Part shown: piece by piece, positions 26,143 to 48,692 of the stretch
Layout: each line of letters begins with the position of its first letter
Position numbering within the stretch: position 1 is the first letter of the stretch
Origin: Chlorokybus atmophyticus
Lineage: Eukaryota; Plantae; Mesostigma and Chlorokybus algae
NCBI GenBank assembly: GCA_009103225.1
Contig: RHPI01002368.1
Coordinates: 1,060,708-1,124,707 of the forward strand
Length of the DNA: 64,000 nt
Direction of reading: 5' to 3'
Translations under genes and position numbers: made by a program
The notes under the pieces: model-generated
Told to the model about the DNA's origin: nothing
Databases searched by the model: none
What the model saw: the letters and a program-made list of their open reading frames with translations, nothing else

Positions 26143-26785
26143 TGTAACAGCCTGGGGCATTTTTTGTATTTTATTGTACATAAAGTACTTATTTTGCCTT
26201 TTTTGCTGGCTTGATGAGGGCTTTTATGAGCTTTATTAAGCCCATGTGGCGCCTGCCCCTGCTGCCGCGCGCGACTCGCCTGCGACCTGCTCGACAGCAG
26301 CTAATTTGGCGATGTGACCCACCTGCCACGCGGTTGTGACACAGCCGCTGACTGGACACGCGCTGTGCAGTGCCAGGTGACGCGGACTGCACAGTCACAC
26401 AGCCGCCGAAGGCCCAACGCGCGTGGCGGGGAGCCTGCACTTGGACCTGCCTTTAGATTTGGTAGTGAATAATGAAATGCCTGTTAATTAGGCTATTTCT
26501 TCCTAAGTGCTTGTATAAATAGAAAAACCCTGTGTAATGCAACCAACTTTGTTTTCTGCTCTCTGCTGTGAGTATGCTGGTGCATGCTTGAGGGAGTTGT
26601 AATCCAAGGCACACTGCTGCGTTCTTGCTTGGCGTGAGAAGTAGTAGTGTTCGTGTGCGTGTGCGCGCTCGACGCGTGCGTGCGTGCGCGAGTGAAGGCA
26701 AGGTTCCGGTGTGAAGATTGTGCTCAGCTGCACACATGTGTTGTATGACTTGTGTGCTGTGTATGTGAGCACGAGCATCGTTACA
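26143..26785 (+). repeat. Gypsy 5' LTR (643 bp)
   Basis: Near-identical to the 3' LTR and followed by a Met-tRNA-type PBS. Confidence 0.96.
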
Positions 26786-27389
26786 GTGGTATCGGAGCCC
26801 TTGGAGGGGTTGGGTTTCTTGTTTTAAGGGGATATTAACTATCTCTTTGGTGTGTGAGGTATTTTTCTGTTTATGGACGCTACCATGGATGATGCACGTG
26901 TTGTGGAGCTTCAGCAAGTGCTGGTAGCTGCTCATGAGGAGCTGCAACGTGTCCAAGCATCTGCCTAAGCTCAAGCGGCACAATTTCAACAAGCCATGGC
27001 GCAAGCGCGCGCGTCCACGCCCGTTACAGCTCCTGTGGTTGCCCCATCAGCCTCTCGTCATGTGAAGCTACCAAAACCAAAGCCATTCAAGGGTCAGAGG
27101 GACGGTGACTATGTTGAGGAATGGGTGTTTGCCGTTTCGACATGGTTAAAGCTCACCGAGGTACCTATACATCTCCGTGTCGATGTGGCTGCTACTTTCT
27201 TTGAGGGAGCTGCACTTGTGTGGTGGCGTCATCGTTGTGCTCGTGTGGAAGCTGGTCTTGAGGTTCCTTTCACTACCGTGGCTGAGCTGGCTGCTGAGGT
27301 GAAGAAACAGTTCGTACCGGTGGAGAGTGCGAAGACGGCACGCGACCAGCTCTCTACGCTTGTGCAAACGCAGTCCGTGATGGCCTATA

Positions 27390-27760
27390 CACAGGGCTTT
27401 TTACGCGCGGACCAGTCGTACGCAGCCCGTAGACCACGTCTGGTACGTTGTAGCATACCAGTGCCGCGACTGGTCCGGCATGATCGGACCACCGGTGGTC
27501 CGGCCCCGGAGCCCGCCGATATGGTCCGAACGTCCGGACCAGGGCTGGTGGCGTGTCCCGCGGCTTGTAGACCGGTACAGCACTGGTCAGCACGCGGCCT
27601 GAGCAGTAGGACCAAGGCTGGTCGCATGCCCTGCGGCCTATGAGCCAGGGCAGCACTGGTACAGAATGCATGTACTGTACGGACCAATTATGTCCTCACA
27701 AGCGGGACCAAGCTGCACTGGTACGGTTGCAAGCGGCCCTCATAGACCATGCATGGTTCC
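27390..27760. repeat. Left subterminal repeat field (GGACCA/TGGTCC units, both orientations)
   Basis: More than a dozen GGACC/GGTCC-type units counted by eye; typical of CACTA ends. Confidence 0.85.
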
Positions 27761-28087
27761 GAAACCGAAACAGCACTCAACAACTCAACAGCACTCAACA
27801 ACTCAACAGCACTCAACAACTCAACAGCTCTTTTGAATCATTAATATATTATGATAACCAACGGTGAAGAATGACGTCGGAAGCATACGACACATCTCAC
27901 CTGGTCCATTGCTCCCAAGGTCACGTGCGCCAATGCTAAACAAGTAGCAGGCACTGGGCATGCATGGTCCCCTGTCCATTTGCTAGGGTTTTGGGCTTGC
28001 GCTGCAGTCTCGGCGGCGGCGGCGGCGGCGGCGGTGGCGAAAACCTTTGGAACAGCTGGTTTCGTGGGTACTACGCATGCACCCAGC

Positions 28088-31000
28088 ATGGCGGACCGAA
28101 AAGCAGCTGATATTGCTGAAAGACTCCACCAGTCTATCGGACTCAAGCTACCTGCAGTCAACCTTGCAGCTTTGCGCAAGCGGAAGCAGCGTTCCAAGTT
28201 GGTTGTCAACGCAACGCAAGGTCTCCTACGTCAAAAGGACTTGGAGTTGAGTTAAAGAGAGCAAGCTCTTGCCCGCAGAGAAGCTGAGGTGTCCCAACTT
28301 TTGGCTGATAGCGGCCTCGCTGGTGACAACGCGTCCCCCATGGAGGTGGATGGGCAGGCAGACCCCTCACTCAGGTAACATCCTTGCCCCCACTAGCTAG
28401 CTTTCAAGCCTCATTGCGACACAGCCAGCACATATTTCTTGACAGCAGCTGTTAAGCGCCTTATATGACTCCCTGCAGGCCAGCTTCAGCAACTCAGCCT
28501 GCTGCTCACCCCCCTGCAACCGCTGGCCAGCCATCCACTTCGCATTCCCCTCTGTCACCGGCTGCTGAAGCTGGAGGTGGCTCATTCGCCGACGAGTCGT
28601 CTGATCATGTGGAGAGCCAGCAGCAGCAGCAGCAGCAGCAGCAGAATTGTCAAGTTATCTGCAACTGCAGTTCCAGTGGATGCCGCGGCATGGTAAGCAG
28701 TGCGGTCCATGAGTTATGCAATCTATTGCTCTGACCGAAAGTCTCATAGGCACTGTCCAGTGTCTACGAGTCATGCACTCCATTGCTGTGACCTAAAGTC
28801 TCATAGGCACTATCCAGTGTCTACGACTTATGCGTTCCTTTGCTGAGACCCAAGGACTCGTAGGCACTGGACAGTGCCAGTCTGGTCTATGACACAGCCA
28901 TGCACGCGTGTGTCTTGCTTGTGATTCTTGATAGCGTGGTGATGTGGATTGGTGTTGATCGCTGGCGTGCTAACCAAGATCTGTCATCATAGATGGTGGA
29001 CGAAGCAGTTGCAAGGGCGCACCGTGCACTGAACCTGGCAGTTGCCGCAAGCAGGTGGGCACCACCTATTCCCCATAGTCAACCTCTCGAGCCCAGCCAA
29101 CCACCATCGGAGTCTGCTACGAAGAAGTGGCTGGATATCTACCTAAAGATTGTGACAGCCCTGGAAGATTCTGGTGTCCAGGTTGCTCTCGTCAACGATT
29201 ATGAAGCTCATCTTTTGCCAAATAAATTCTGTGGTCAAGCTGGCCTTGGAGGTTCCTTTTGAACAGGAGCAGTTGCGGGATGACATCGCCAGACTCATAG
29301 GCGACACAATATCGCACAGCCCTGTCGCGGATGAGCTGCCGACAGACATTGCCGCCGTGGATAAACTGTTGGCCGCGCTCGGCATGCCTGTTCCTCAGCG
29401 CCTGACCGTCTGTCCCACATGCAAGTACTTGTTTGATGCACCTTATCCCACACTCAGTGAAGATGACGAAGACTCGGACACGAACGAGACCAAGCAAAAA
29501 ATGATTGCCTTCGCAACACACCATGCGGAGGGGGATGCGGCAGGGTTCGCAAAGAATGTTGCGACTTCTTGTACAATCGTACAGGTGCCTGGCTCAGCGC
29601 CAAGTTAGCTGTCCCTTCAATTGCTCACGACTATCTGGAGGAATGGCGCCACAAAGATGAGTGGTTGCACGTCCCTGTGGAACAAGTACCTGCTGCAAAC
29701 ACTGAGTACTGGCATGGTGCGAAGAAGCAGCATCACTGCATCTTCTGGGACCCTCGCCACAAAATCAAGCTGCCTGTGTCTTGTGCATTCTGCCACCACA
29801 TCGCGGATGTCGATTTGGAGCATCACAACGCAGGCGATCACGTGACATTTGAATGCTCAGGGTGCCACAAAACCAACCATCCAATGGTACAGCAAGCTCT
29901 TGGCGACCCTCGCAACATAGCCCTGCTAATCCATGCCGACGGCTTCAGCTTAACAACCACTGTGAAGCACAGCTGCACCGTTGTCAGTGCCTCTGTGCTC
30001 AATGGCGGGAAGCGCATTTCCTCACAAGAGTCTTCCGTCATGCGTTTGCTCTTTGTTCCCACTGATCAGCTCCCAAACGGTGTGGACAGTCTGGAGCCCT
30101 TTCTAGAACCACTGGTGCGTGACCTGGAGAACCTCTACTTGAACGGCTTCACTGTTCGTTATGGCCTCGATTCCAATCATGTCGACAGCCGCGTGCTTGA
30201 TCGACGACCAGGTAATGACTGGGTTATAACATGTTTTGTCACCTATATCACCCAAAGTCTCATAGGCACTGTCCAGAGTCTACAATGTATGCAGTCCATT
30301 TTTGTGTATGCTAAAGTCTCATAGGCACTGTTCAGTGGCTGCGACTTGGTTATAGCATATCTGCCTTCTTGCGGTCTATAAGACTGTCATAGGCTGCACT
30401 GCCCAGTGCGGCCTATTACAGTCTCTATCAGACTGGTTGTGAGATACTGATGTTGACTTCATTGCAGGTCAAGAGATAACGCTGCGGGTAGTGCTGTGGG
30501 CATGGACGGGTGACCAGCCAGCGCAATGTGAGATAGGTCAGTTTCAAAATGGAGGCCTCGTCCCCTGCCGGCGTTGTCTCCTCAAAGCCACTCAGCACCA
30601 AGTGCCCTGGCGTGCTGAGCAGGGTGAAGATACTACGAGGACACGTACAGACCATTTTTATGGTGACAATCGCTACTACTGCCGCCATCCCCCAGCAGAG
30701 AGAGCAGCAAAGGATGCGTTCGACAACGCGTGCATGGTGGACTCACTCGATGGCCAAAACCGGAAAGAAAAATCAATGGAGTGCGGCATCACAGGGAAAT
30801 CTCCACTCTGGCGGCTGTGGCATCTGTATGAGTTTAACCCTTGCCATGACTTGGTCTATGACACGATGCACCTGTTGCTGGAGGGGCTTTGCAAAAGTTT
30901 CGTGCACAGTACGTTGGGTGCAGACAGTTCAAAGCATGTCGAAGACATTGCCAAGGTGGAGCGGAGGCTGTCTCAGATGCGCATATCACGCCCCATGGAC

Positions 31001-33104
31001 TTGAAGAGCAAACGTTTCCCAAGAGGCATCAGCAAGCACCTGGCTCGGTTCAAGGCCCAGGACTTGCAGATGTTCGTGCAGTATGCTGTGCCATACGCTG
31101 TGTCCGATCTGGTAGACGAAGCAACCAGAGACGTCAGCTTTGCGCTTCACTTGCTCATCCGCATCTTCTTCCACAACTCTCGCCTACATAGCTGGACTGC
31201 GGAGCTGTTGGAACTTGCTGACGCTCTTTTGAAATATTGGAGAGTCTACTCGGAGGACCTGTTTGGCACCAACAAAAGGCCCAACGAGCATGTGGCCGGT
31301 GCCGGTCACATTCTGGAGGACATCATCTGGCACGGGAGTCATGATGTGTACTGGTGTTTTGTGCAAGAGCGCACTGTGTCCAACTATGTCAACACCTTCA
31401 CCAATGGGAAGCAGTTTGAGATCAGCTACATGCGGCGTACACTATAGAGATGGTTTTTGAGGACGCTCAACATCATGCGAGAAGATCAGAGGACTGGAAA
31501 GCTGTTGTGCCACCGAGCTAATGATATAATGGCGCACTCTCAGCAGGTTTACCAGCCTTTGAGTGGAGCATGTAGTGACTGTCATTACGAAGTGCGCACA
31601 CAAAAGCACGCCATGGAGCTCTGGACCCTCGCTGAGAAATTCCCAGACTTGGAGCATGCACGACTGATCAGAGAAAAGGGCATCCTTATTGGCAGCACCA
31701 GGAAGCCTGTCCCTCTTCAGGGACCCTTGGCCTTGGAAATTAAGCGCGTTGAGGACATCACTGGCAACTTGCCCGGAGGCATACGCAAGTTCCGCGCATA
31801 TCTGCATAACGGGGTCATCTACAGGTGTGGTATAGTCTACGAATTTTGCAATCTATTGCTCTGACCTAAAGTCTCATAGGCACTGTCCAGTGTCTACGAA
31901 TTTTGCAATCTATTGCTCTGACCTAAAGTCTCATAGACACTGTCCAGTGTCTACGAATTTTGCAATCTATTGCTCTGACCTAAAGTCTCATAGGCACTGT
32001 CCAGTGTCTACGAATTATGTAATCTATTGCTCTGACCGAAAGTCTCATAGGCACTGTCCAGTGTCTACGAATTACGCATTCTATTGCTCTGCCCGAAAGT
32101 CTCATAGGCACTGTCAGGTGTCTCATAGGCAGTGTCTACTGTCATCTCTTGATACAAAGTGAGTGAGTAAAGCCTTTGGTATTTGCAGACGCAGAGGCGT
32201 TGATAACGTGTAGATGGCGGACCCAACTATCGCACCATGCCGGGTGGATGAGATCTACCTGTTCAATGAGCGGAAATCCACTATCCATGTGCAAGTGCGG
32301 CTTTATACCAAGAAGCGTGATGCCATGGGCAATGACCTGATTGACAGAGACACTGGTGCACAGTGCATTGGGCGTTTGGCAGATGAGTTTACGCTCATCG
32401 GTGGAGACCAGTTGCAACGCAAGCTCTGGGTGTTGCTCAACCGTGATGTAGCAAATCATCAATTGGCGTACGACTATGACAGCACAGAGTTGAGAGTCAC
32501 TGCAGCCGACATCCCCTTGCCGGTGTGGCCAGAAAAGGGCGATGTCCTGGAGATGCGGCACAACAGCAAGTCCATTTTCGACTTCAGACTTCCGCATGAG
32601 CCCCCAGATGAAGATCCTGCTGACCCACCCCCTTGGGTTGTTGTGGTCAAAGAGGTGCGGTCCGACGGTCATATGGTAGTCGACTACCAAAAGAAGGCAG
32701 GGGGGAGGAGGCTAGGCGTCTGGGTGGTTAACACAGCTGCGAGCGACCAGGTGGAGGACCCTTTCTCAGCCAAAACAAAGCTCGACTGGCCAAGGCAAGG
32801 GAGCAGCAGAAGCAGCTGCGCTTGGACTGAGAGAAGTAGAAGTGATGGACGGCGAATGAAATTCAACCAACATCGCATGTATTGGAAGCCAGGACAGCAG
32901 GCAGCAAGTGAGTGTGTTTGCACTTTCATTCACGTGTTTGTGAAGTGCGTGTGTCTGCATCAGTTCGGACAACTGCGCCTTGCAGACAACTATGTGCACT
33001 GTGCGCGTCCTCCGCTTCTAGGTGTTGCTGCATCGAAACACCAAGTTAGAGCACAAACACGAAACAGCGGGGTCATAGACCGAAATGGACAGTGCGGCCT
33101 GTGA
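28088..33104 (+). CDS. Multi-exon CACTA transposase (Transposase_21/DUF4218-like) with BAH-like and Tudor-like C-terminal domains; several stops and frameshifts
   Basis: PRNIALLIHADGF, LEPFLEPLVRDLENLYLNGF, TGDQPAQCE, YDTMHLL and HILEDIIWHGSHDVYWCFVQER parallel the En/Spm TnpD motifs. Start and exon edges are approximate. Confidence 0.85.
28710..28880 (+). repeat. About 3 copies of the 57-bp intronic unit
   Basis: AAAGTCTCATAGGCACTGTCCAGTGTCTACGA units. Confidence 0.85.
31835..32115 (+). repeat. 5 x 57-bp tandem repeat in a transposase intron
   Basis: GTCTACGAA starts at 31835, 31892, 31949, 32006 and 32063. Confidence 0.96.
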
Positions 33105-33126
33105 CGCACAAGTAGCCATAGACTGA

Positions 33127-36100
33127 CTAATGCTGATTTTGGCCAAGGGTTACATGAAGTTGGGGCACTTGCTGTCGGAGGTACTGGACAAAGCCTTCAA
33201 CCAACTTGGCTATATTGCTGGCATTGGCGACTCCTGAACGTGCAGCAGCGATACCGTCTTTTAACTTCTTACGAGCATCGTCGTCACCGTCACCGTTGCT
33301 GTCATCATCGCTGCTTTCATGATCGCTGGGTTCATCACCACTGCCGTCTCCATGATGATCACCTCCAGCAGGTTCATGATGATCACCTCCAGCAGGTTCA
33401 TCACGACCTCCAGCAGGTTCATCACCTCCAGCAGGTTCATTACCGCTGACATGCTGACCCTCAGCAGCACCTCCTGGAGTCCCTGCAGCAGTTTGATGGC
33501 CACGGTCTATGGCATCCTTCTCTGCGCTTCCTTGTGGTGGCCTGTCCGGAAACACTAGAGGAACTGAAGGTCGCCCCGAAACCCCTCCCAATGCTGCAAG
33601 TGCAGCAGCAGCAGCAGCAGAGGCAAGAGCAGCATCAACAGCAGCTTGAGAAGGATTGCTAGAGGTAGCCGCAGCACCAGAAGCAGCACTAGAAGGAGTC
33701 GGACCAGGAGCTGCAGCAGGAATGGATGGCCAAGGATGGTTGCACTCCCACTTGTTGATGAGGTATGCGCGCAAGGACTTGTAATTCTCAGCCCATCCTG
33801 GATCCTGAAAATGGATGGTCTTCATCTGCTCTTCCAGCCAAACTTCTCGCTTCTGTTTCCTCCGATTAGCAATGGCGTTGATGCGTAGCCGGCGTGTCTC
33901 CCACTCCGCCTTGTTGCGTTGCTGCAATTGCTTTTGCTCAGCCTGCCACTGTGCAGTCGTATCTTGGGCGTTTTGAACATTGGTGCGCACGGCAGCTATC
34001 TGCTCCTCAATCAACCAAGGTCGCCTGCTTTCATTCAGACCATTACGCACCATGGACAAAATGGTCTTCTCGATTCTTGACTGATAATCCTGCTCCTTCA
34101 GCCTGTGCTGATTTGCAGCCCGTGTCACCATGGCGCCCTGAGCGGCAATCTCTTGAAGGCCTTTGCGAATTGTAGTCTCTGCCTTACGGAACACTTCCTT
34201 GGTAAGTTTCTGCGGATCATAACCATCAGTTAGAACACGAATTACACACAACTCATTTACGTTTAATAACACAAACATACCCTCTGTTCTTTCTCTTGTT
34301 CTACTTTGGAGTCTATCTGTCTTAACAGCAGGAATAGTCTATCTAGCACGCGTGTAAGCTCAGCGCACTTGCTTTCAGCTGAGTCAAATATCCCTTTTAA
34401 AAGGCGTACAGACGCCTCTCTGACAGTGTGATTGACTGTGTCGTTCTGGTGACACAAGTGCAGTCTATGAATGCACAATGACATGTACGACCATGCACTG
34501 ACGAAGCGTTCTCAACACTTACATTCGGTCTTTGATTTCGGGCGACTTGTGGTCGTTTCAGCACCTTCCATGTGTAGGCGCCTAAAGATTCACCAGCTTG
34601 ACGCGGTGCAGTGCAAGCGGCGAGGTACGCGCCGTCTTCGAGCGCGACGCCATGGCGAGCTGCCATCTCTGTTGCCTCCTTGATAAAATTTTCTCTGGCC
34701 GCCTCGAAAAAGTAAACCATGACCTGAGGTAAGATGGTGATCAGCACATTGTTTGCAATACTGAATGATAAGGTCATAGACCGCACAGCTCTCACAGATG
34801 CAGTCTATAACAGCAGGAGACAGTGTCTGGCAGAGCAAGTGATGTCTATAGGCATGAGCCACAGGCTGCATATACTCACATGGTCTGTAGGTTGCTCGTC
34901 TGGAGGTGGAGGGAAGGGATCGTATTCCATGAGCAGCTCTTCCCCGGCGGCGATGTCACTCTGACTCCTAACCTCAGCTGCCTGCACCGCAGCCTCATCA
35001 ACGGAGTCCATGATGTGGCGATTGGGTTTGTACTGCGTATCGCGGCTGGAGTTGAGGAAGCCAGCTATGTTCCCATATTGAGGGTGGCCATCGATGACAG
35101 GGCTCTGGCGGCGTGGCACGTCCCTGATGACCTGCAGGTGGTATCGCTGGTGGTGCAGGTGCTCCTTCTGAGGGAATGTCTTCTGCATCTCCCGGTAGGA
35201 GTACCACTTGCCGTCAAAGACCATGATGCGGTCACCCTTCTTAATAGGCTGGCAGGTGAACAAGCCGAGCCCTGCGCCAGGGATATTGGAAGGCTTGATG
35301 ACGAACTCTTTGCCAGCAAAATAGAAGAGTTCGCCTATGGGAATTGGACCATTCGTCCACAGCTGCCATGGGTCACCGGTCGCTCTATGTATGCGCTTGC
35401 GGTTGGGAAGCTCTCTGTCACTCTACAAACAACAAGTGACGGTAAGTTGGTGTGAATTGTCATAGGCTGCAACTGAGCAGTGCATGCAGCATGGCGCCCA
35501 TGGTATGTGATCAGCATGCATGATATTATGCGAACAGAGACGCACCCGCAGATGTTCTTTTGATGGCGGTGGCAACTCCACAGCGTCCATCCCCGTCTTG
35601 GTGAATCGATTGACCTCGGCTGCAGCATTGGTCACAGCCAGTTCACGGGCCTGCGCTGATCGGTGTTGCCTTGGCTTAGTAGCCTGTGGGGCATCGGCTA
35701 CAGGTTGGTTCACCCTGCCACCCTGTGTGTAAGACAATGGTAAGGATATCATATACATTTATTGACTCACAGACTGTCTCGGCCTATGACATAAGACAAC
35801 GCGCACATGTCCTGATCAGAGCAGTCTATGAGTATTCGCATGGATACTCACAGGTGTTTGGGGAGTTTTGGGAGAGCCGGCTGCCGATGACGTTCCTATT
35901 TTCATGCCTCGCCAGCTGGCATGCCTCGGTTTCTTTGCAGGTGGCACCACCTCTTCCTCCTCAGACTGCTCCAATTCCAACACCTCCTGCGTAGCCTTCT
36001 GCGCTGACTCCTCCGACCCCTCCTGCATCACATCCTCAAGTTGTTCCTCAAGCTCCTCTGGCTCCCTCGTCTCTATCGCAGCGAAGTCGAACTCGGTTTC

Positions 36101-36875
36101 CTCCGCTGTTGACCCTTCTGCCGCTGAACCTGCAGCGGCAACACCTGAACCTTGCTGCCGCTGCCGCTTTGTCCGCTTTGGTGTGGTTTGCTCCTTCGGG
36201 TAGAGGGGGATGTTGTTGTAATCGTGCTCAGCGTCATCCCAGAATTTCTTGTTCTGTGTAACAAGCGACAAGGTTAGCAACCAAGGCGTTGTAATGGCAT
36301 TTTTTTTCGCTAACAGTTGCATGCTGCATGTGCTTACAAATGCAAAGGCTCCAGTGTGATGCTTTCGCAGATACTCCTCGGTGACTCTCCGCACGTTGTC
36401 GACGGAAACTCTGCTTTGTTTGGGATGATTCAGGGCCTGCACGCCAACATATGCTTCACGTAAGTCAATTTTGCATAGTCTTTTGCCCAGATATCAGTTC
36501 ACTAGCATGCATACAACGTCTATGAGTCTACAAGTCTATAAGAACTAACGCACTTTCACAACATCACACGCACCCGTACTGCTTTGGAGAGAGAATCCCC
36601 CATCCGTCCCTTCAGCTCATCTGCTGTCTCCCTGCCGCCCTGGTTGGTTCGTCTGCGCATGTACCTGCAATATATCTGATGTGCAGGTGCTGCGCGATCT
36701 TTGCAGTCTTGGTGTGTGTGGTTTCTGGAAGCCCGTTGGACTTTAAATGGCCCGCCTTCACATTTGTTCTGCAGTAGGGACAGTGCCAATAGAAAGTCCG
36801 CTGGTGTGAAGGCTGCCTCCGAGTCTCCTCTGAAGTCGACGATGCCGCCGACACGGTAGGGATGTCATCATCCAT
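33127..36875 (-). CDS. CACTA-1 cargo gene: Zn-finger-like N-terminus, acidic region, SET domain, coiled-coil C-terminus (multi-exon)
   Basis: FYWHCPYCRTNVKAGH...H..H...C exon. SET motifs IKPSNIPGAGLGLFTCQPIKKGD, GNIAGFLNSS and GEELLMEY at 34919-35305. ORF 33127-34278 is helical and coiled-coil-like. The joining of exons into one gene is inferred. Confidence 0.78.
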
Positions 36876-37020
36876 GGTGTTTCTCAGCTTGCTGATCTCT
36901 GCAACAACTTGCACTGGATAACACTCTTGTGCAACACAAGCCAGCACTCCGCTACCACACCTCTGCCAGCACCGCCAGAACTACCCTAGGCACACCAAAC
37001 ATCACGCTGCCGGCGGCGTG

Positions 37021-37104
37021 ACAGGCGACCGCATAGGCCGCTCCGACGAACCCTAGGTCACAGGCGACCGTATAGGCCGCTCCGACGAACCCTAGGTCAC
37101 AGGC
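37021..37104. repeat. 2 x 39-bp direct repeat between the divergent cargo genes
   Basis: ACAGGCGACCG(C/T)ATAGGCCGCTCCGACGAACCCTAGGTC at 37021 and 37060. Confidence 0.9.
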
Positions 37105-37331
37105 ACTGGAAGTTGATTCATTTGGAAGTGTTTGTTGTCAGGTTCCGTCATTTAGAAGTTTTGTTCGCTCGCGCGTGCGTTGTGCGCATGTGTTGTGCGT
37201 TGTGCGCAGTATGACTTCGGCACTGGTTATCGCAGCTGCAATAAGTCGCGTGCTGTAGACTCTCGTGCTATAGACTGCTGTGTGAGCCTTTTGTCACCTG
37301 GAAGCTTAGGTGCTTTGTGCATAGTGTAACA

Positions 37332-39616
37332 ATGGTGACCGCAGTGCCTTCTGCCAGCCAAGTGTTCAACTGTGGCAACAACGGCCAGAAAACTGGGGAC
37401 AGGTTCCTGAGGGACAACTTTTCCTCTGTGCACCCCACCCATGTGCGAAACATGGACAAGTTCACCAACAAGCTCAAACAGTGGGAGCAAATCCCTGGTC
37501 CAGGTTGGAAGGAGGTGAATTTCGACAAGCGGAGCAAGGATCATGCAGCGCAGGCCAGCATTGCCAAGCTGGAGAGGTTCTGTGAGGAGTTAGAGCCGGA
37601 GCTGGAGCCTCTAGTGTTTGGGGAAGGCATAGAGCTCCGCATGTCCAGAGGTCAGTTGTTTTCTGTGAAGGTTTGCTCTGAATGCCTTGTGTGTAGATCG
37701 ATAACTGTTCAGGTGAAACTAGCCCATATTCATGCATATAGCAAGCTTTGCTAGCCCTCAAGCTGTTGTTGCTGCTGGTCAGTGTTGCCACTGTTGCAAG
37801 TCAGTTGATATCACGCTACTTGCCAAGTTGTCGCGTTACTTGATGGCTTGCTGTTCAGCTGAATTCAGCTAGTCTTCATGTATATCCAGCTGTTTTTACT
37901 ACTGGTTAGTGGTGCCACTGTTGGTCGGTTACTGTTTGTCAAGCTGGAACACTGGACAGTGCCTATGAGTCCTTAGGTCTCAGCAATGGATGGCATAAGT
38001 CGTAGACACTGGACAATGCCTATAAGTCCTTAGGTCTCAGCAATGGAACGCATACGTCGTAGACGCTGACAACAGTGCCTATGAGCATCTAGAAGCAATG
38101 GATTGCATAAGTAAACACTGGACAGTGCCTATGAGTCTTTAGGTCACAGCAATGGAGTGCATAAGTCGTAGACACTGGACAGTGCCTATGAGTCCTATGG
38201 TCTCAGCTATGGAAATGCATAAGTCGTAGAGTGTCTTGGACGGTGCCACCTTATGAGACCAAAGCAGCTTTTTGGACATGTGGACATCCTTATTACTTTT
38301 GCTTGGCAGAGCACATCCGGGCATATTTCATACAACGCCAATGGACTTATCGGAGGGGCGTTAAAGAAGAACGAGGTGAACGCCAAGGACAGTCCAGGGA
38401 GCAGCGGGTCCAGCTCCGTGCGCATGCTCGAGAAGCAGAGCGAACTGCCAAACATGGCACAGCTGCTCGTCGCCGGTCTGTAGGGTGGGGCAGAGTTTTC
38501 AGCCTTGACGATTACAGCCCTTCGCAAACAGTCGTTCTGTGGTGCCCCTTGAGCGACGGGCCCCTTCCAGATGACGTGCTGCGGGCTACTTGGCTCATAT
38601 TCAGGTAAGGACTGTGTGCGCGCATGTATGATTGCAACCATGAACTGTGACAACTCCACTAGAAGTGAAGCAAGCTGAATGTACAGCTGTTGTGTTGTGT
38701 TATCTAACACGATGCCTTTTCATGAGGTGCAGACATGCAGACGATTACGACCGAGACAAAGTCTTTGACGTCGATATGCAATCCTCAAGTCGTGAAGACC
38801 CATGTGTGCCCGTGGCCATTGCCACCATCCTCGAGATTGCCGAGGTGGATGAGCCCTGCCGCACATACAGCGTGCAGATCATTAATTGGCTGCCAGTGTT
38901 TTGCGTGGAGGACGACAGCGTGCGGCCGTTCATACCTATCAGGTCGCAAAGGCTCATGCATGGCAAGACACCGGATCATTACACACGCGCCGAGCTAGAG
39001 GTAAGTTGGTGATTGTCAGTCACGCACAGTCTATGCTTTTGTCACTGCATGTCATCAAGTGCGAGACGTGCGTCGCGTGTAGTTGGCTAAAGTGTGCACA
39101 TGTGAACCGCCTATGACACTGACAACTGATGAAGTGCAGAGCGTGACAGTTGAGTGGCCACTTATGTTCATGAGCCAGATGGGCACCTGCGTCTGTGAAA
39201 ACGGTGAATGCAGCTTCAATAGGCACGTCCGGATGGGGGAATGCCAGGCGAGAGTACTTGAAGAACTGAACACCAATGCGCAGCAAGATGATCAGGTTTG
39301 TCAGCTATGTGCGCGCAATTTCTTGTTTCAAGTGCTTTCTGGTTGTGCTGATGATGTGCCCATGCAGGACCACGAGGTTTCAGTGGATGATGAGAAGCTG
39401 GAGATGCTGGCGGCTGTGTGCTGTGGCACTGAGCAAACACCTACTAGGGCGCAGGTTGGCCGGCAATGGGAATTCTGGCGGAAGAAGCAGGTGGCGCTGA
39501 TGGAGAGCGTGGCACCTCTTCCCTTTCGAGACCAGGCCCGGATGGACAGCATTCCAACACAGCGTATCATGCAAGCGGTTGTGCAGTTTGCAATGAAGAA
39601 GAAGTGGCTGGGCTGA
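37332..39616 (+). CDS. CACTA-1 cargo gene 3, multi-exon protein of unknown function with a Cys motif
   Basis: Exons near 37332-37650, 38230-38604, 38730-39000 and 39125-39616, each with a protein-level homolog in CACTA-2 at 61432-63000. Confidence 0.7.
37948..38230 (-). repeat. About 5 inverted copies of the 57-bp unit in an intron of gene 3
   Basis: GACACTGGACAGTGCCTATGAG units are the reverse complement of the 31835-32115 unit. Confidence 0.9.
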
Positions 39617-40299
39617 GACCCAACGCAGGGTGGTCAGCTGGGCTGGATAAACACGAGGAAACGGCCAGGTATGTTTTGAGCTTATAGACCGCTCATAGGC
39701 TTGGTAGCTGTGACCAATGCACAGTGTCACAATGCAGTCTATAGGGTATGCTCGTAAGCTGGTAAGCTGTAAGCTAATAGTGCCATGTACGAGCAGTCTG
39801 GTCTCTGTGCATGTGATTTTACACATTCGCCACTCATTGTGCATTCAGGCATGCCGGATGAAGTGAAACGCCTGAGCCCAAGAGGTTCCGCTTCATGGGG
39901 CGATGGGAGCCAAGCAGGACGGCATCCTCCAAATGATAGGTATCAGAGATGTGCAAAGTTGCAACTGTTGCATGTTGCTGCTGTTACGTGTCTATACTTT
40001 AAGAAATGTACATTGTGTTCTACAGTTGCGGTGTTGCTCATATGCAGTGTGCGCAGTGTCTACGACAATCTGTTGTTGGCGCACGCGGCGTGCACTCGTT
40101 CATCTGAAAGGCCGTCTACATTTGCAAGTATGGAGCAGAGTATGGAACAGAAGGAACGTGTGCGTGCAGTGCCGAGATCACGTGGTGTGCGCAGCATGCG
40201 CTCAGTCTCATCATAGGCAGGCTATGAGCGCTGGTGATCTTAGTAGCTATGAGAACACTGCTGTAGTTAGCATAGATGTTTGACACTTTGCAGGTCTCG

Positions 40300-40918
40300 C
40301 TGATTGCCAGACACGCACTATATAATAGAATGGGTTACCGTGAATTGCTGGTGCATGGGTCATAGACCAGCATTGGTGCAGGATGTCAGCGGGTGTCGTG
40401 CACCAATGCTGGTCCCAAATTGCAAGCATGGACCAATGCAGTGAGATTTGGCTGGTATAAAGAAATGGTTGGGTGTGGACCAGGCATGGTCCCGCCAGCA
40501 AAGCCATGGTTGGTCCCACTAGTCGGGACCATCCTTGCAGACCATCTGGGCTAGACATTAAGATACAAGTAGACCATGCATGGTCCCACAGTGCGAACCA
40601 AGGATGGTCCTGCTACTCGGGACCAGTAGTGGTGATGCTTTTGACAGAACTGTGCCAAGAGCGGACCATCCTTGGTGCATGCAGCAACACGCATGGCAGA
40701 CCAGCATTAGTCCCATTGCGCTCGTCATGATAACAGCAACCAGGGCTGGCCCGGTTTTTTGGGGGACCGTGGGACAATTACGTACTGTTTGGACCAGCCC
40801 TGGTCCCCGCGTGCAGACCAAGGCGGGCGACCCTGGCCCGGACCCCAAGCCGCCCGGGCGTTTTGGCCCTGGTCCGTACGTGCGGACCAGGGCTGGTCCG
40901 CGGAAAAAATTCCGTGTG
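40300..40918. repeat. Right subterminal repeat field (GGACCA/TGGTCC)
   Basis: Many GGACCA/TGGTCC units leading up to the TIR. Confidence 0.85.
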
Positions 40919-41471
40919 ATACCTCTGCGTTTCAGCGTCTTGTGCTCTCTGTATCGAACATGACTGAGGAGGAGCAGCTGGACCGCTACACGCGCGGGTT
41001 GAAGACTCTTTGTCGCAAGGAAGTTGAGCTTCATGACGCCAAGACTCTCGCGGAGGCCATTCGCATTGCTGAGCGCACGGACGTGTTGTACTTCAAGGGG
41101 GCTGCCAAAAACACTAATCGTGGACATTACAATCACTTCCGTGGAGGTTCGTATCGCTCATACGCATCTGTTGGGGCTGGTTTGGGAGCTGCAGCAGCTC
41201 AGGGGGCTGGCTTGGGGCCAACTCCAATGGAATTGGGTGCGCTCCACGTTGCTATGAAGGCCCCAAAGGGTCGGGAGGCTGCCAAGGCTGTTCGGAAGTG
41301 CTGGGAGTGCTCTTCTGCTGATCACGCGCGCTCCAACTGCCCTATCTATAAGGCAAAGTCTGCTGCACATGCCCGCAACGCTCGCAGCGGTGGACGCGTG
41401 AACATGGTGGAGGAGGAGATGTTGCAGCCGGGAAACGGCTCACCTCAGTAGCTGGAGAGGCTCCTGCTGAG

Positions 41472-44400
41472 GTGGTGATGCAGCCTCACTATGATGTTGA
41501 ATGTCCAGCGGCTGGCGTGGAAGCGTTGTTGACGGTTGGCGGCATGTGCGCAACGGCAACGCAAAGCGGTATGGTTCGAGTGCCCGACAAGGCGAGGCAG
41601 CTGTTGGGAGTCATGGCTCTGATCCGTGAGGGCAATGGGCCATGGATGGAGTGCAAGATGCTGGTGGATTGCGGCGCGAACAGCAATTTCATGAGTCGTG
41701 AGGTTGCGCGTCGGCACAAGTGGTTGTCATGGGCAAATGCCGGCTCGGTGGCTCTAGCGGACGGCTATGCGCCAGCAGGAGGAGCTTCCAAGCAAAGCAA
41801 AGAGCTTGAAATGCACGTGGGGATGATGAAGGATCGCCTACGGTTTTGCTGCATCGAGCTGAACAACGGCTTTGATGGCATTTTGGGGCTGCCTTGGCTT
41901 TGGTCACATAACCCCGCCATTGATTGGAGGAAGCGGGTGCTCACTACCCCGGAAGCTGGTGGTGAGGTTTTGATGTGCTTCAATGCTTCAATGCAAGGCG
42001 CGTGTGTGGTTCAAGAGCGTGTGAGCTGCGTCGAGGCTGCTAGCAATGTGCTGCATGCGCGTGACGCGCACGACACGACGGCGCGCCAGCAAGCTGCACC
42101 ACAACATGCTTCTAGCTCAAGGGGAGGGGTTCCAGAGCTGGTGTCACAAGTTTCTAAGACCAAGATGGAGCAGATCTGGTCCGGGAACAATGTGAAGGAT
42201 GCATGGCTGTGCATGGTGCGTGAGACACCTCCCAAGTCGGACTTGGAGCTGGTCGGCACTGGTTCGGAGAGTTCGAAGGACCCCGAGGTGCAGAGGTTGC
42301 TTGAAGAGTTCAAAGACGTCATGGTGGATGGGCTACCAGCTGGTCTGCCACCCACGCGAAGTGTTGATCACCGTGTGGAACTGATAGAGGGCGTGCACAA
42401 GCCGCCGTACCGACCAGTGTACAAGTTGTCTCCGGCTGAACTCGAAGAGGCGAGGAGCCAAGTCGAGGACCTTCCACAACGTGGGTACATCAGGCACAGC
42501 AAGTTTCCTTACGGTGCACCTATCCTATTTGTACGTAAGAAGAGCGGAGCCTTGCGCATGTGCATCGACCATCGGCCACTCAACAACATCACCAAGAAGA
42601 ATGTGTTCCCTTTGCCACGCATTGATGAGTTGTTGGAGCAGCTCGAGGGTGCTGAGTTCTTCTCAAGCTTGGACCTAGCCGGTGGCTACCATCAGATCCG
42701 TGTTGCGCTCGAAGACGTTGAGAAGACGGCTTTCAATACTCGCTATGGCCACTATGAGTGGTTGGTGAGGTCTTTTGGTATGACAAATGCTCCGGCAACC
42801 TTTCAAACCTTGATGAATGAGATCTTTGCTGATCTGATTGGCAAGGGCGTGCTAGTGTACCTCGACGACATCCTTGTGTACACAAAGAGCAAGAGAGAGC
42901 ACGTGGCATTGCTACACGAGGTGATGCAGCGTTTACGTACACACAAGTTGTTTGCTCAGCTCAACAAGTGCCGCTTCTTGCTTGAAGAGGTAGAATACCT
43001 TGGCCACATTGTATCCAAGCAAGGAATCAAGGCAGATCCAAGGAAGCTTGCCGCGGTGCGCGATTGGGCTGCCCCGAAGGACATGAAGGGTGTCATGTCG
43101 TTCTTAGGGCTTGCCGGCTACTATCGTAAGTTTGTAAAGGGCTTTTCGCACTTGGCGGCACCATTGACGGCATTGTTGAGGAAGGGGGTGGCTTGGAGCT
43201 GGTCGGAGGCTGCAACAAAGGCATTTTCCGACTTGAAAGAGGCCCTGACATCGGGTCCCGTGCTGCTGCATCCCAACATGCAATTGCCCTTTGTGGTGGC
43301 GTGTGATGCGTCCGACAAGGCTATTGGGGCTGTTTTGCAGCAGGATCACGGTAACGGCTTGCAACCGGTGGCCTATTTCAGCAAGAAGATGAGCGGGGCT
43401 GAGCTCAACTACCCCGTTCATAAGAAGGAATTGCTGGCGCAGGTGCTAGCGCTACGGCAATGGCGTTGTTTCCTTGAAGGCAAGCGGTTCACACTTGAGA
43501 CGGACCACTCGCCATTAAGGTACCTTCAAACGCAGCCTCACCTCTCACGGCGGCAAGCTCGTTGGCTCGAGTTCTTCCAACTCTTCGACTTTGAAGTGAA
43601 GTACAAGCCGGGCTCTTCAAATAAGGTTGCGGACGCATTAAGCCGTCAACTCAACGCGCTTGAAACGGTGGTGCAAGTGCAGCCCAAGTGGCTTGACCAG
43701 ATCCGTGCCTTATTGCATGAGGACGCGGTGGGGGAGAAGACCATTGAGGCGTTGGAGAATGGGACTGAACATAGCGGCCTTTGGGCATTGAAGGACGGGC
43801 TGCTATGGCATGGCGATCGCATGTATATACCCAACATTGCGCACATGCGCGTGGCATTGATGAAGGAAGCGCATGATGTGCCAATGGCTGGTCATCAAGG
43901 GCTGGAACGGACACTAGCCTTGTTGAAACTGAAATTGTTCTGGTCGGAGATGCATCGTGACGTTAAGGACTATGTGGCATTGTGCGACACTTGTCAAAGG
44001 GTGAAGGCGAGCAATCAACGCGCCAGTGGGCTGCTCCAACCATTGCCGATACCTTTGACGAAGTGGGAGCAAGTTGCTCTCGACTTCATCACGGGGCTGC
44101 CACGGACACGTGAAGGGCATGATGCTATCTTGGTGTTTGTGGACAAGACTAGCAAAATGGTGCGATTGGCGCCATGTACGGAGACTTGCACAGCTCCCGA
44201 GGCTGCCAAGTTGTTCATCAAGCATGTGGTGCGCTCTCATGGCCTTCCAAAAAGCATTATCAGTGATAGAGACCCGCGGTTTACTGGCAACTTTTGGAGA
44301 GCTCTCCACGCAACTCTAGGCACGAGCTTGAAGTTCAGCACCGCGTACCACCCCGAAACGGACGGCCAAACGGAGCGCGCCAACCGCGTCATCAAAGACA

Positions 44401-45110
44401 TGCTACGGTGCTATGTGAACAGCCGCCAAAACAATTGGGGAGACATGCTGGAGCTGATTGAGTTCACTATTAACAACCACAAGAGTGCAAGCACGGGCGT
44501 GACACCTTTCCTTATGAACTATGGGCAACATCCATTGACGCCATTGATGGCGTGGGTGCCTAGCATGCAAAGTTCAGATGTGGAGGCCGTGGACGGCTTT
44601 CTTGAAAGGTGTGCCGACATTACCAAGGCAGCTCGAGAGGCTCTGCTTGTGGCGCAAATCCGGCAAAAGCAATACGCCGATGCGCGTCGCAAGGATGTTG
44701 TGTTCGAGGAGGGTGACCTTGTAATGCTTTCAACCAAGCATGTGCAGCTGGTCACGGGGGTGCGCAAGCTGAGTGAGCGATGGTTTGGGCCCTTTAAAGT
44801 GATCAAGGTCATCTCGAAGGTGGCCTACAAGCTGGAGCTGCCCAATACCATGCATGTGCACCCTGTTTTTCATGTCTCGCTTCTTAAAGGTTATCGAGGG
44901 GAGCCACCAGCTCGTCCGCCTCCAGATGTGGTTCGTGAAGGTGAGGCTGAGTGAGAAGTGGAAGCAATTGTCACGGACAAGCTGATCCGAGGCGTGCGCA
45001 AGTATTTAGTGAAGTGGCGTGGTTATCCAATGCACGAGGCGACATATGAGCCCGAGGAGAGCTTTACCAATGCCAAACAGGTCTTGCAAGACTACAAGGC
45101 CAGAGGAGGC
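41472..45110 (+). CDS. Gypsy pol: protease, RT, RNase H, integrase, chromodomain (one in-frame TGA at 44952 before the chromodomain)
   Basis: LVDCGANSNF, YLDDILVY, CDASDKAIG, AH..H/C..C integrase zinc finger, WFGPFKV, and YLVKWRGYPMHEATYEPEE chromodomain. Confidence 0.96.
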
Positions 45111-45153
45111 AGTCGTCAGCTTCGAGGACGAAGCTCCCCCGGGGGGGAAGGGG

Positions 45154-45926
45154 TGTAACAGCCTGGGGCATTTTTTGTATTTTATTGTACATAAAGTACT
45201 TATTTTGCCTTTTTTGCTGGCTTGATGAGGGCTTTTATGAGCTTTATTAAGCCCATGTGGCGCCTGCCCCTGCTGCCGCGCGCGACTCGCCTGCGACCTG
45301 CTCGACAGCAGCTAATTCGGCGACGTGACCCCCCTGCCACGCGGTTGTGACACAGCCGCTGACTGGACACGCGCTGTGCAGTGCCAGGTGACGCGGACTG
45401 CACAGTCACACAGCCGCCGAAGGCCCAACGCGCGTGGCGGGGAGCTTGCACTTGGACCTGCCTTTAGATTTGGTAGTGAATAATGAAATGCCTGTTAATT
45501 AGGCTATTTCTTCCTAGTGCTTGTATAAATAGAAAAACCCTGTGTAATGCAACCAACTTTGTTTTCTGCTCTCTGCTGTGAGTATGCTGGTGCATGCTTG
45601 ANGGAGTGAATAATGAAATGCCTGTTAATTAGGCTATTTCTTCCTAAGTGCTTGTATAAATAAAAAAACCCTGTGTAATGCAACCAACTTTGTTTTCTGC
45701 TCTCTGCTGTGAGTATGCTGGTGCATGCTTGAGGGAGTTGTGGTCCAAGGCACACTGCTGCGTTCTTGCTTGGCGTGAGAAGTAGTAGTGTTCGTGTGCG
45801 TGTGCGCGCTCGACGCGTGCGTGCGTGCGCGAGTGAAGGCAAGGTTCCGGTGTGAAGATTGTGCTCAGCTGCACACATGTGTTGTATGACTTGTGTGCTG
45901 TGTATGTGAGCACGAGCATCGTTACA
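45154..45926 (+). repeat. Gypsy 3' LTR, lengthened by a ~130-bp duplication at the n (45602)
   Basis: Matches the 5' LTR; the segment around the N is repeated, which is typical of a contig overlap. Confidence 0.92.
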
Positions 45927-46411
45927 AGCTACCTCCTTCGAAGCCACTAGTGGTGCTGCATCAGCAGCAACAGCCACACCGGCTACGACGTCGACTCCGT
46001 CAATGTCAATAGCAACTATTTTAGTTGCACCAGGAGTTGGTACGTCAGTGGGCACCACGACGCCAACATCATTGAGCACAATGGCGACAGCCACTGCTGC
46101 CACCGACTCTGCAGCAGTTGATTGCACCGGTCTCACTCCAGCTGCAGGAGCACCTGCATCAGCGAGTGTTGAGACCACTCTCACGCCACTACCCGGCACT
46201 ATCGTAACCACTGCCAGTGCCATCGTCGAGTCCGCTGCTACTGCAGCGACGCGCGCAGCTACGTTGCCCGCCCTCGACGCCACTCAGGCTGTCTCGCGAG
46301 GTCAGCAAGCTGAGCGCGCGTGGGAGACCATCATGCGTGGAGTAGATCCCACTACCATTGCTTTTGGGCGAGGAGGAGAGCGCACCACGCGCGTTGAACG
46401 CAGTGATTGCG
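45927..46411 (+). mobile_element. Continuation of orphan gag-like element copy 2 after the gypsy insertion
   Basis: Matches 5275-5755 up to GATTGCG, then switches to transposase sequence. Confidence 0.88.
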
Positions 46412-47665
46412 CACATACCAGCTGTGATGAAGTTGAAAGCAGAGAAGATCCCAATCGCAAGAAAAAAAAAGCCAAGAAGTATGGCGTCAACGGGCTGTCG
46501 CCTTTGTGGAGGCATTGGCGGATGTACAAGTTTGACCTATGCCAGGACATGGTCTTTGATACCATGCACACGCTAGCCAAAGGACTCGCCAAGAGCTTGA
46601 CAGCCGGCACTCTGATGGATGGTGGCGACGAGCAGGTCAGCAAGGTTGAGATTGACAGTCGCCTAACTGTGATGAGAAATGCACGGCCCAGGGAGTTCAG
46701 GCATGGTAACCGCTGGCCACATGGCCTCAGCAGTCGCCTTGGATGGTGGAAGGTGCAGGAGCACCAGCTCTTTGTGCAGTTTGCTGTGCCTTATGTTTTT
46801 CACAAGCTGCTAAGCGAAGAAAGGAGAGACCTCGTCATGTGCCTCCACATGATAATTCGCTTGTTCCTTGACATCTCGCGCCGCTTGGGTTGGGTTTCCA
46901 GCCGTCTGAAGCTCGCTGATGCATTGCTCAGGTACTAGAAGGTGAACAGTGAGATCTGCTTAAGCACTAACAAGAAGATTCTGGAGCACATTGCGGGAAC
47001 TTGCCACCTGCTTAACAACATCCGTCGACATGGTCACCATGATGTGTTCGGGTGCTACGCCTTTGAGCGCTCTGTGAAGTTGTATGTTAACACCCCATCC
47101 ATCAGTAAAGACTACGAGATCAGCTTCATGAAGCGATCTGTCAGGAGATGGTTTGTGCGACTCTTTGGCGTCATGCGTAATGATCAAAGGTCTGGCCTGC
47201 TGCTCCACCACAGAGTCGTCAATGCACTATCTGCAATTAGTAAAACAGAATTTAACGGGTTCACCTGGTATGAGGTGGCTACAATCAGACACGCAAAGGA
47301 GATATGGGCTTTTGTGGAAGCATATCCCACCTTGGCACACTCTCAGCACATCAAAGAGAAAGGCATATTGATTGGACGAGGCAGCATTCAGTACGTAGGG
47401 AACGACGCCTTGTTCGGACGCATCTGCACACAAGAGAACATTGCCATCCACACCAAGTCGCGGCGGACAGTGCATGACTACAAAGCCTACATGAGGGACG
47501 GTCTGGTATACAGGTACGTGCTGGCATTGACATCCGTAAAGATGTCCACTTTATGCTGTCCACTACACAGTCTCGACTGTCCATATCGCATTGACAGTCA
47601 CACCGACTATCTATGTTGGCATTGACAGTCGCAGACTGTCAACGACTGTCACAGCAACCACTGTT

Positions 47666-47669
<4 letters not shown>

Positions 47670-47724
<55 letters not shown>

Positions 47725-47748
47725 NACACGCACACACACACACACACA
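47670..47748. repeat. (TC)n then (CA)n microsatellites around an N, in a transposase intron
   Basis: Direct read; n at 47725. Confidence 0.95.
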
Positions 47749-48137
47749 TGTGCACTCTCACACAGGCGCGACTGCAAGGATGCTGTGATGCTTGATGGAA
47801 GCAGGCCTGCCATTGTCAGCAAAATCTTCATGTTCTTCCACACAGAGTGCAATGTGTACATTGCCGTCCACACGTACAACCTGCGAAAAGATGCTGCTGG
47901 CAATCAATATATGGACGCGGACTCTGGTGCACTGCATGTGCGCACGTTGGAGGAACCCTACAATCTTGTTCGAGGGCAGCAGCTGCTGCGCAAAGTGTGG
48001 ATGCTGACGGAGAGACCAAGGCTGCACCCCTACATGCTGGCTTACGACATCAACAACCCAGAGCTGCGATTGCTAGCAGCTGATATACCTCTCCCCGTAT
48101 GGCCTAAAGCCGGGGATGTGCTGCTTGTAAGACATTA

Positions 48138-48692
48138 TGTAATGCCGGTTAATGTGGAATAGGCTAAGAAGGGCTTATGAAGCATTGATAAGGAATACAC
48201 AACCTCTCATGGCGGCGACTTTTGCTACCATGGCTTAGTCGGCTAAGCCCCGCGTTACATTGGTAATCGGAGCTCTAAAGGTCGCGGGATCAAATCCCAC
48301 CGGGCGCAAGATGCGCGCGAGTGGGTAGATTTTCGGCGACCGTCGGAAACGATCCAAGGCAGTTAGTGTGACTGGTTAACAATAAGCTGTGAGGTGAAGC
48401 TGACTGAGTCGGCGCGCAGGGTCGCTCCTGCGCGCGGCAACGTGGCAAGTCGCCGCGGAAAACTACGCGGCATGACCGGTAATGGCTAGTCATGACCGGA
48501 CGCGCGCAAGTCCTGCCGGTCATGAAGGGCCAAGATGTGCAGGTAAAATCGCGGTTAAAGCCGGGTTGAATGTAATGCCGGTTAATGTGGAATAGGCTAA
48601 GAAGGGCTTATGAAGCATTGATAAGCAATACACAACCTCTCATGGCAGCGACTTTTGCTACCATGGCTTAATCGGCTAAGCCCCGCGTTACA
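48138..48692 (+). mobile_element. TRIM (miniature LTR element), 555 bp, 122-bp LTRs, TSD CATTA/CATGA
   Basis: LTRs 48138-48259 and 48571-48692 (TGTAA...TTACA). PBS TGGTAATCGGAGC. Non-coding 311-bp interior. Removal restores the transposase reading VRH-EDEKK. Confidence 0.93.

Follow-up and report, generated by a model that had tools for sequence, protein, structure and literature searches.

A CACTA-type DNA transposon of the alga Chlorokybus atmophyticus with a SET-domain gene as predicted ancestral cargo

We analysed a stretch of 64,000 nucleotides from the green-lineage alga Chlorokybus atmophyticus (contig RHPI01002368.1 of assembly GCA_009103225.1; in the following this whole stretch is called the window, and positions are counted from its first letter). 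Positions 27390-40918 of the window represent a 13.5-kb cut-and-paste transposon, a genuine insertion with three genes, i.e. a transposase gene, a gene for a protein with a SET domain, and a third gene. It is a structurally complete DNA transposon of the EnSpm/CACTA superfamily, which was recently inserted into the gag region of a young Gypsy retrotransposon. Comparison with a second element in the window indicates that the SET gene is an ancestral cargo of the transposon lineage and not a one-off capture. For the anatomy of the element and the conservation of its cargo, taken jointly, our confidence is high. The best explanation taken as a whole, from this anatomy to the proposed role of the SET protein, is given about an even chance of being correct.

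The termini of the element are imperfect inverted repeats of about 26 bp. The 5′ terminal inverted repeat (TIR; 27390-27415, + strand; CACAGGG...CGCGGACCAG) aligns with the 3′ TIR (40893-40918, − strand) once the latter is reverse-complemented; the 5′ terminus reads CACAGGGCTTTTTACGCGCGGACCAG, and the 3′ terminus, written as reverse complement, reads CACACGGAATTTTTTCCGCGGACCAG. The 10-mer CGCGGACCAG, common to both TIRs, occurs twice in the 64 kb, compared with 0.04 expected occurrences, and the two copies are inverted and each 16 bases away from an end of the element. The element is flanked by a target site duplication (TSD) of 3 bp, ATA, with the left copy directly before the 5′ end (27387-27389) and the right copy at 40919-40921. 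Removal of 27390-40918 together with one ATA reconstructed an empty site with an unbroken Gypsy gag open reading frame (ORF) of 308 aa that includes a CCHC knuckle; a single window permits no better empty-site test. The ends, the duplication, and the restored gag ORF bear out the original prediction, made from the letters of the window, that the element is bounded by TIRs and TSDs.

The interrupted host Gypsy retrotransposon spans 26143-45926 (+ strand). The identity between its long terminal repeats (LTRs), at 26143-26785 and 45154-45926, is about 99%, and therefore the insertion of the element into it is recent.

The subterminal regions are rich in the motif GGACCA/TGGTCC. Of 30 instances, 26 are found in the terminal 600 bp of the two ends, i.e. 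11 in the first 600 bp (5′ subterminal region, 27390-27990) and 15 in the last 600 bp (3′ subterminal region, 40319-40918), while the 12.3-kb interior contains four. The longer motif GGACCAG has 25 occurrences in the window, versus 8.8 expected. This subterminal layout is typical of En/Spm-type elements. The element further resembles maize En/Spm and plant CACTA elements in its 3-bp TSD, its termini starting with CAC, and its transposase, which is probably of the Transposase_21 type. In contrast to the canonical elements, which start with CACTA (CACT(A/G)), its TIRs start with CACAG and CACAC, so that they have only CAC in common with the canonical sequence.

The transposase gene (28993-33104, + strand) comprises multiple exons and was identified by its Transposase_21 match, its neighbours in a protein atlas, and its identity to the second element. 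Its ORF pieces are 28993-29259, 29156-29605, 29467-30321, 30443-31444, 31448-31861, and 32214-33101. The match to Transposase_21 (PF02992) has 24 bits, is thus under the cut-off of 28.6, and covers profile positions 25-121 only; it is partial and sub-threshold because introns split the domain. In the Pfam scan no transposase family other than Transposase_21 scored, and the Plavaka model (PF18759) had no match among the ORFs of the element. The protein-atlas neighbours of the transposase core belong to Transposase_21, DUF4218, and Plavaka clusters, with Plavaka at lower ranks. Three motifs on the + strand, LIHADGF (29926-29946), WTGDQPA (30503-30523), and FVQERT (31358-31375), are DDE-like, and we take them to fit the DDE pattern of CACTA transposases. 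The homologues obtained for the transposase core were one 283-aa match, whose contig measures 1.7 kb, and three short contigs from metagenomes, all too short to include neighbouring genes.

An in-frame TAG (31445-31447, + strand) is located within a block of the transposase that both elements have conserved; the second element has an Arg at this position. It would remove the pieces 31448-31861 and 32214-33101 from the product, and because the transposase is truncated in this way, the copy at 27390-40918 is probably non-autonomous. The element is otherwise well preserved, and the SET gene model is open despite the TAG in the transposase gene. The original prediction had named a transposase of a CACTA transposon, and the gene is indeed Transposase_21-like, but the stop codon had been missed. 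Conservation between the two families is highest in the C-terminal region of the transposase (32214-32822), with up to 66% identity to 47767-48135 and 48696-49010 of the second element. This region is beta-rich and had no match in Pfam or among PDB sequences; its AlphaFold2 model, based on an alignment of three rows, has a predicted local distance difference test (pLDDT) value of 42, too low for use.

The SET gene (33127-36875, − strand) is oriented tail-to-tail with the transposase gene, with 22 bp between their stop codons. A simple splice-site search led to a model with seven exons (36875-36665, 36453-35852, 35722-35546, 35422-34880, 34804-34523, 34445-34281, and 34209-33127), whose predicted junctions define GT-AG introns of 71-211 nt, several of them with GTGAGT/GTAAGT donors. 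The modelled spliced frame starts with the ATG at 36875 and stays open up to the stop codon at 33127, and its 1020 codons specify a predicted product of 1020 aa with basic, nuclear-localisation-like stretches as well as acidic stretches. The first coding exon (36665-36875, − strand) contains a finger-like motif, CPYC...H, which is kept in the second element as CPFC; a within-window alignment of the two finger exons covers 68 aa with 32% identity (E 1.6e-7), and the first exon had no match in Pfam or PDB. The SET domain comprises about residues 370-497 of the model protein and is followed by a conserved post-SET block. The last exon (33130-34209, − strand) encodes a heptad-rich, charged stretch, read as coiled-coil-like, and then a low-complexity region of Ala, Gly, Pro, and acidic residues. 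A CAG/GCA-rich low-complexity stretch within this exon (33597-33645) reached a contig depth of up to about 390 in two sequencing runs, which reflects an artefact of the simple repeat rather than the number of copies.

The SET domain (34922-35272, − strand) is encoded within one exon and contains the motifs GAGLGLF, YGNIAGFLNSS, and EELLMEY. The translation of 34808-35305 (− strand) matched the Pfam SET profile (PF00856) with 38 bits, compared with a cut-off of 22.4, and covered profile positions 1-104 of 105; the complete domain is contained in the ORF piece 35422-34808. The AlphaFold2 model of the SET domain has a pLDDT of 79, with values above 90 in the core. A Foldseek comparison of the model with the PDB yielded 360 matches at E ≤0.001, of which the best 50 are all SET enzymes; SETD8, MLL1, NSD1, EZH2, and SET7/9 were matched at a probability of 1.00. 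The SET motifs described in the original prediction are thus present, as GAGLGLF, FLNSS, and EELLMEY, and the full-length match of the hidden Markov model agrees with its assignment. Its exon with a SET domain stands as well, but with boundaries that are more likely 35422-34880 than 34919-35305.

A second element, diverged and decayed, is located at 46349-62895 (+ strand) and has the same gene order. A tblastx comparison of the first element with the rest of the window revealed collinear blocks for all three genes in it, i.e. for the transposase gene (46349-48974), a SET gene remnant (60670-57977, − strand, with the SET part at 59148-58477), and gene 3 (62272-62895). The transposases of the two elements are 34-66% identical at the amino acid level. 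The C-terminal SET cores have 46% amino acid identity, the SET exons align with an E-value of 3e-24, and the similarity of the SET genes also spans the finger exon and the post-SET block. Both SET domains contain the motifs (V)IDGHP, GN[IV]A..[IL]NS, AGEELL..YDPF, and PPD, and the ORF 57881-56910 of the second element has a composition like that of the last SET-gene exon. When the window was compared with itself by blastn, the non-coding DNA of one element had no match in that of the other. The second element is old, and its transposase gene has a stop codon.

Because this second, diverged family repeats the three-gene order with the SET gene included, we conclude that the SET gene is an ancestral cargo of the lineage, which was present in the common ancestor of both families and was long kept under constraint. 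Two further claims of the original prediction hold with this result, i.e. that the SET gene is convergent to the transposase gene and divergent to the third gene in a three-gene cassette, an order that recurs in the second element, and that the SET gene is an integral gene of the family. The alternative is that the SET gene is an accidental passenger without a role, i.e. a one-off capture of a host gene of the Pack-MULE type. The substitutions between near-identical copies look neutral (see below), as would be expected for a passenger. However, the gene has the same position and orientation in the second family, with a SET core that is 46% identical while the non-coding DNA has no blastn match, it has no close host homologue among 1.84 billion representative proteins, and it is a complete gene with its own finger and tail and not a fragment. 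A Pack-MULE-like one-off capture was therefore rejected on account of the SET gene in the second family, and a passenger without a role is considered to be extremely improbable.

The SET-gene region is also present in further copies. Two independent DNA data sets, labelled as different organisms, contain 34 and 38 contigs, respectively, that map to 32900-38700. The mapped contigs fall into identity classes of ≥99%, 95-99%, and 90-95%, and therefore several copies of the SET-gene region exist.

The SET exon was used for an exhaustive phmmer search of the 1.84 billion representative proteins, and no close host SET protein was found. The search had 31 matches below 1e-3, and because the best match had only 50 bits and 38% identity, no ordinary host SET gene is close to the cargo gene. 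The nearest relatives (P0004, P0009/P0033, and P0025) are 30-38% identical and have the motif YGN[IV]AG[YF][IL]NS in common with both SET domains of the window; P0004 further contains EELL..YDPF, as do both window SETs. In a maximum-likelihood tree these relatives group with the window SETs with a support of 94/88, which is below the strict threshold, and with long branches. P0004 and P0033 are encoded on giant-virus-like metagenome contigs, with a major capsid gene of nucleocytoplasmic large DNA viruses, a DVNP gene, and an EsV-1-7-type gene. Shared ancestry with SET genes of giant viruses may thus be regarded as a lead and not as a demonstration. Like the window proteins, the giant-virus SET proteins are encoded on a mobile or parasitic genome and have a Ser after the Asn, but they have neither the finger nor the coiled-coil tail. 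The vSET protein of chlorella viruses is an analogue of such a virus-borne SET protein.

On the contigs of both P0004 and P0033, a JmjC-like gene is found at most 3 kb upstream of the SET gene (L001, 8668-10498, and L002, 8749-11401). In L001 a TnpB/Fanzor-like gene (Cas12f1-like_TNB) is located directly upstream of the SET gene, which recalls the Fanzor-associated SET cargo of bangiophyte red algae. Beyond SET, neither the JmjC-like nor the TnpB-like neighbours of the viral SET genes have similarity to the two elements. A scan of the IMG/VR viral contigs with an alignment of the SET subfamily gave no confirmed relative. The locus with P0025 (L003) was considered as a related transposon and was rejected, because only its SET gene matches and its GC content is 32%. 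Another protein, P0031, is a Ty3/Gypsy polyprotein of 2440 aa with gag, protease, reverse transcriptase, RNase H, and integrase, and it also ends in a SET domain (2227-2344), from which it follows that the capture of SET domains by mobile elements is recurrent.

The third gene (37332-39616, + strand) is oriented head-to-head with the SET gene and is Cys-rich. Its ORF pieces are 37245-37751, 38192-38605, 38644-39009, and 39083-39613, and it has strong splice donors (GTAAGT/GTAAGG). The gene is supported only by ORF blocks that are conserved in the second element, i.e. three blocks with 37-41% identity. None of the pieces had a Pfam match, and the piece 39083-39613 also had no match in the protein atlas. 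The divergent intergenic region of about 450 bp between the SET gene and gene 3 contains a 39-bp tandem repeat with 2.2 copies (37021-37104).

The element contains four arrays of a 57-bp unit, all of them in modelled introns or other non-coding DNA. Arrays 1-3 are oriented on the + strand and comprise about three copies (28705-28876, non-coding), about 1.7 copies (30250-30347, in a modelled transposase intron), and 5.1 copies with 95% matches (31835-32123, also in a modelled transposase intron), respectively. Array 4, with five copies (37949-38230, − strand), is inverted relative to the other three and lies in a modelled intron of gene 3. The unit contains the near-palindrome CACTGTCCAGTG, and it had no blastn match in the second, diverged element. 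By analogy to the repeat arrays of red-algal Plavaka elements, the 57-bp arrays may be landing sites for a protein.

In the mechanism that we propose, the accessory protein would be a nuclear lysine methyltransferase that depends on S-adenosylmethionine. The finger and/or the coiled coil would bring it to the element's own DNA, and the four 57-bp arrays with their palindromic core would be the obvious candidate landing sites. The protein would then set a histone-lysine mark, by which copies would stay expressible or accessible to the transposase and silencing by the host would be countered. Intact copies would supply the transposase in trans to copies like that at 27390-40918. The parts of this proposal differ in their strength. 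It is moderately likely that the SET protein is an active methyltransferase. That it acts on the element's own chromatin in favour of the element is a tentative idea, with the odds somewhat against it. The most specific version, i.e. a green-algal CACTA lineage with a self-encoded methyltransferase whose SET domain is related to giant viruses, which is directed by finger and coiled coil to intronic 57-bp arrays and arose independently of the PAG cassette of red-algal Plavaka elements (see below), is regarded as quite unlikely.

Several observations weigh against the proposed mechanism. In both families a Ser takes the place of the His in the NHS motif (the second element has NSV), and SUV39H1 is inactivated by mutation of this His. 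A comparison of the modelled exons of the window copy with a copy of about 98.5% identity from other data sets revealed 21 non-synonymous and seven synonymous changes. The N-terminal half of the SET gene in the second element has stop codons and a frame change, and in the copy at 27390-40918 the transposase gene carries a stop codon. Searches of sequencing runs found the element only in contig sets of the DNA type, and these contained no splice joints. Moreover, no observation connects the SET protein with the 57-bp arrays.

The ratio of 21 to seven looks neutral, which is expected for decay after insertion, and it lends no support to constraint. Because copies decay neutrally once they are inserted, the ratio of non-synonymous to synonymous changes between near-identical copies is uninformative about active lineages.

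The replaced His is the basis for a different view, i.e. that the SET domain is catalytically dead and acts as a scaffold or binding module, e.g. with histone tails or S-adenosylmethionine as ligands, or as a decoy that blocks host methyltransferases. It would be compatible with this view that the copy at 27390-40918 has a Phe instead of the Tyr of the (E/P)Y.G strand, though the second element has the Tyr, and that the similarity to characterised enzymes is low, with EZH2 as the best, weak match among PDB sequences (E 0.001). On the other hand, the deep divergence of the two families has left the GxG motif, the invariant Asn, and the ELxxxY Tyr in place, and in a set of 24 SET sequences there is almost no variation at this Tyr and at both Gly columns. 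In addition, the fold is predicted with high pLDDT values over the core, and all nearest relatives carry N-S or N-D at the NHS position. Because Ser or Asp is found there in the nearest relatives, the replacement looks like a trait of the subfamily and not like decay. A dead SET domain is thus considered to be rather unlikely, and an active methyltransferase remains the preferred reading.

An active enzyme might also act in the opposite direction. It might mark copies or target regions repressively, in the manner of H3K9 or H3K27 methylation, and thereby restrain the element or aim its insertions, which would limit the copy number and the damage to the host or steer insertions into heterochromatin or other transposons. 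The copy at 27390-40918 is indeed located inside another transposon, in a window that consists almost wholly of nested transposons, and EZH2 is the best sequence match in the PDB, albeit a weak one. Furthermore, trimethylation of H3K27 is found preferentially on DNA transposons in species of the green lineage (PMC11982613). However, neither sequence nor fold discriminates the substrate class, as SETD8, MLL1, NSD1, and EZH2 score alike, and nesting in repeats is also produced by purifying selection against insertions into genes. We regard a restraining or aiming role as having a small chance, and not a negligible one.

Another option is that the methyltransferase has a non-histone substrate, as is the case for several SET enzymes, e.g. 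the transposase, the product of gene 3, or a host factor. The Pfam scans detected no chromatin-reader, pre-SET, or post-SET cysteine modules, with which histone methyltransferases are typically equipped, and the SET gene is always paired with the two other proteins of the element, both of which would fit such a substrate. In contrast, the basic, nuclear-localisation-like stretches and the finger-like motif suggest proximity to DNA or chromatin, and the JmjC-like genes that adjoin the nearest relatives on giant-virus contigs hint at histone chemistry. A non-histone substrate therefore appears to be improbable, and a histone lysine that is methylated in favour of the element is still the reading that we prefer.

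The concept of a second element-encoded protein that acts on the chromatin state of its own element is not new, and the En/Spm system (TnpA/TnpD) and VANC of VANDAL elements are thought to work in this way. TnpA and VANC bind DNA, counteract silencing, and have no enzymatic domain, in contrast to the accessory protein of the window element with its methyltransferase fold. The original prediction, which knew of no described CACTA lineage with a SET cargo gene, has to be revised in this respect, because the red-algal Plavaka gene PAG2 carries a SET domain (10.1101/2025.02.11.637652). Giant Plavaka elements of Bostrychia moritziana, which belong to the EnSpm/CACTA superfamily and are found across florideophytes, have three accessory genes, PAG1-3 (10.1101/2025.02.11.637652). 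PAG2 encodes an N6-adenine DNA methylase (PF01555) plus a SET domain, and PAG3 encodes a ParB-like domain plus a 2-oxoglutarate (2OG) oxygenase; repeat arrays adjoin PAG3, and the authors propose chromatin-directed functions for the accessory genes (10.1101/2025.02.11.637652).

The window element resembles the red-algal Plavaka elements in its superfamily, its conserved accessory genes including a SET gene, and its internal tandem and inverted repeat arrays. In contrast to the Plavaka cassette with its three accessory genes, it has two, and in the Pfam scan its transposase had a sub-threshold match to Transposase_21 and none to the Plavaka model, with Plavaka clusters found only among its lower-ranked atlas neighbours; moreover, its host is a green-lineage alga and not a red alga. 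The SET protein of the window combines a finger, the SET domain, and a coiled-coil-like tail without a DNA-methylase domain, and no ORF piece of the SET gene matched PF01555, the methylase domain described for PAG2, at E-values up to 1. The pieces of gene 3 had no Pfam match to the ParB-like domain or the 2OG oxygenase described for PAG3, and they do not resemble the JmjC-like genes that adjoin the viral SET genes.

SET genes have also been described in other types of transposons. For HarbingerS and for MuDR families of Phytophthora, SET genes were reported in Repbase Reports 2014, as cited in PMC12730594, and Helitrons with captured SET genes are cited in 10.1101/2025.02.11.637652. According to these citing descriptions, the SET accessory gene is a feature in common with the window element, whereas the superfamilies (PIF/Harbinger, Mutator, and Helitron) and the hosts are different. 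Fungal KDZ/Plavaka and other DNA transposons carry TET/JBP dioxygenases (PMC12730594). They represent the same superfamily with an epigenetic cargo, but the enzyme is a dioxygenase that acts on DNA bases and not a methyltransferase for protein lysines. Our literature search found no paper describing a SET cargo in CACTA elements of green algae. SET accessory genes in DNA transposons, including EnSpm elements, are known, and with its lineage and its architecture the window element extends this theme without founding another.

That transposons carry epigenetic enzymes of their own directly attests to an arms race over chromatin, and the known examples include DNA methyltransferases in retrotransposons, TET/JBP enzymes in fungal elements, and SET domains in red-algal Plavaka. 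No assay of any transposon-borne SET enzyme was found in the literature covered. The window element is a compact, apparently young, and nearly intact example with clear boundaries, a complete SET gene, a sister family, and candidate cis sites. The kinship with SET genes of giant viruses, if true, would link the viral and the transposon tool kits for the manipulation of host chromatin.

The window consists almost wholly of a stack of nested transposons, in which the young Gypsy retrotransposon encloses the CACTA element. The best named relatives of the Gypsy pol are from Closterium and Haematococcus, with 41-52% identity. The Gypsy retrotransposon (26143-45926) is itself nested in another repeat, which is related to 4497-5755, and upstream of it (18552-20295) there is a 1.7-kb palindrome in perfect register that matches its own reverse complement to 97%. 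The second element encloses a Copia retrotransposon (50128-55093) with LTRs of about 96% identity as well as a solo LTR of the same family (60025-60455). It also contains a terminal-repeat retrotransposon in miniature (48137-49671) with three 122-bp repeats, which splits the C-terminal domain of its transposase.

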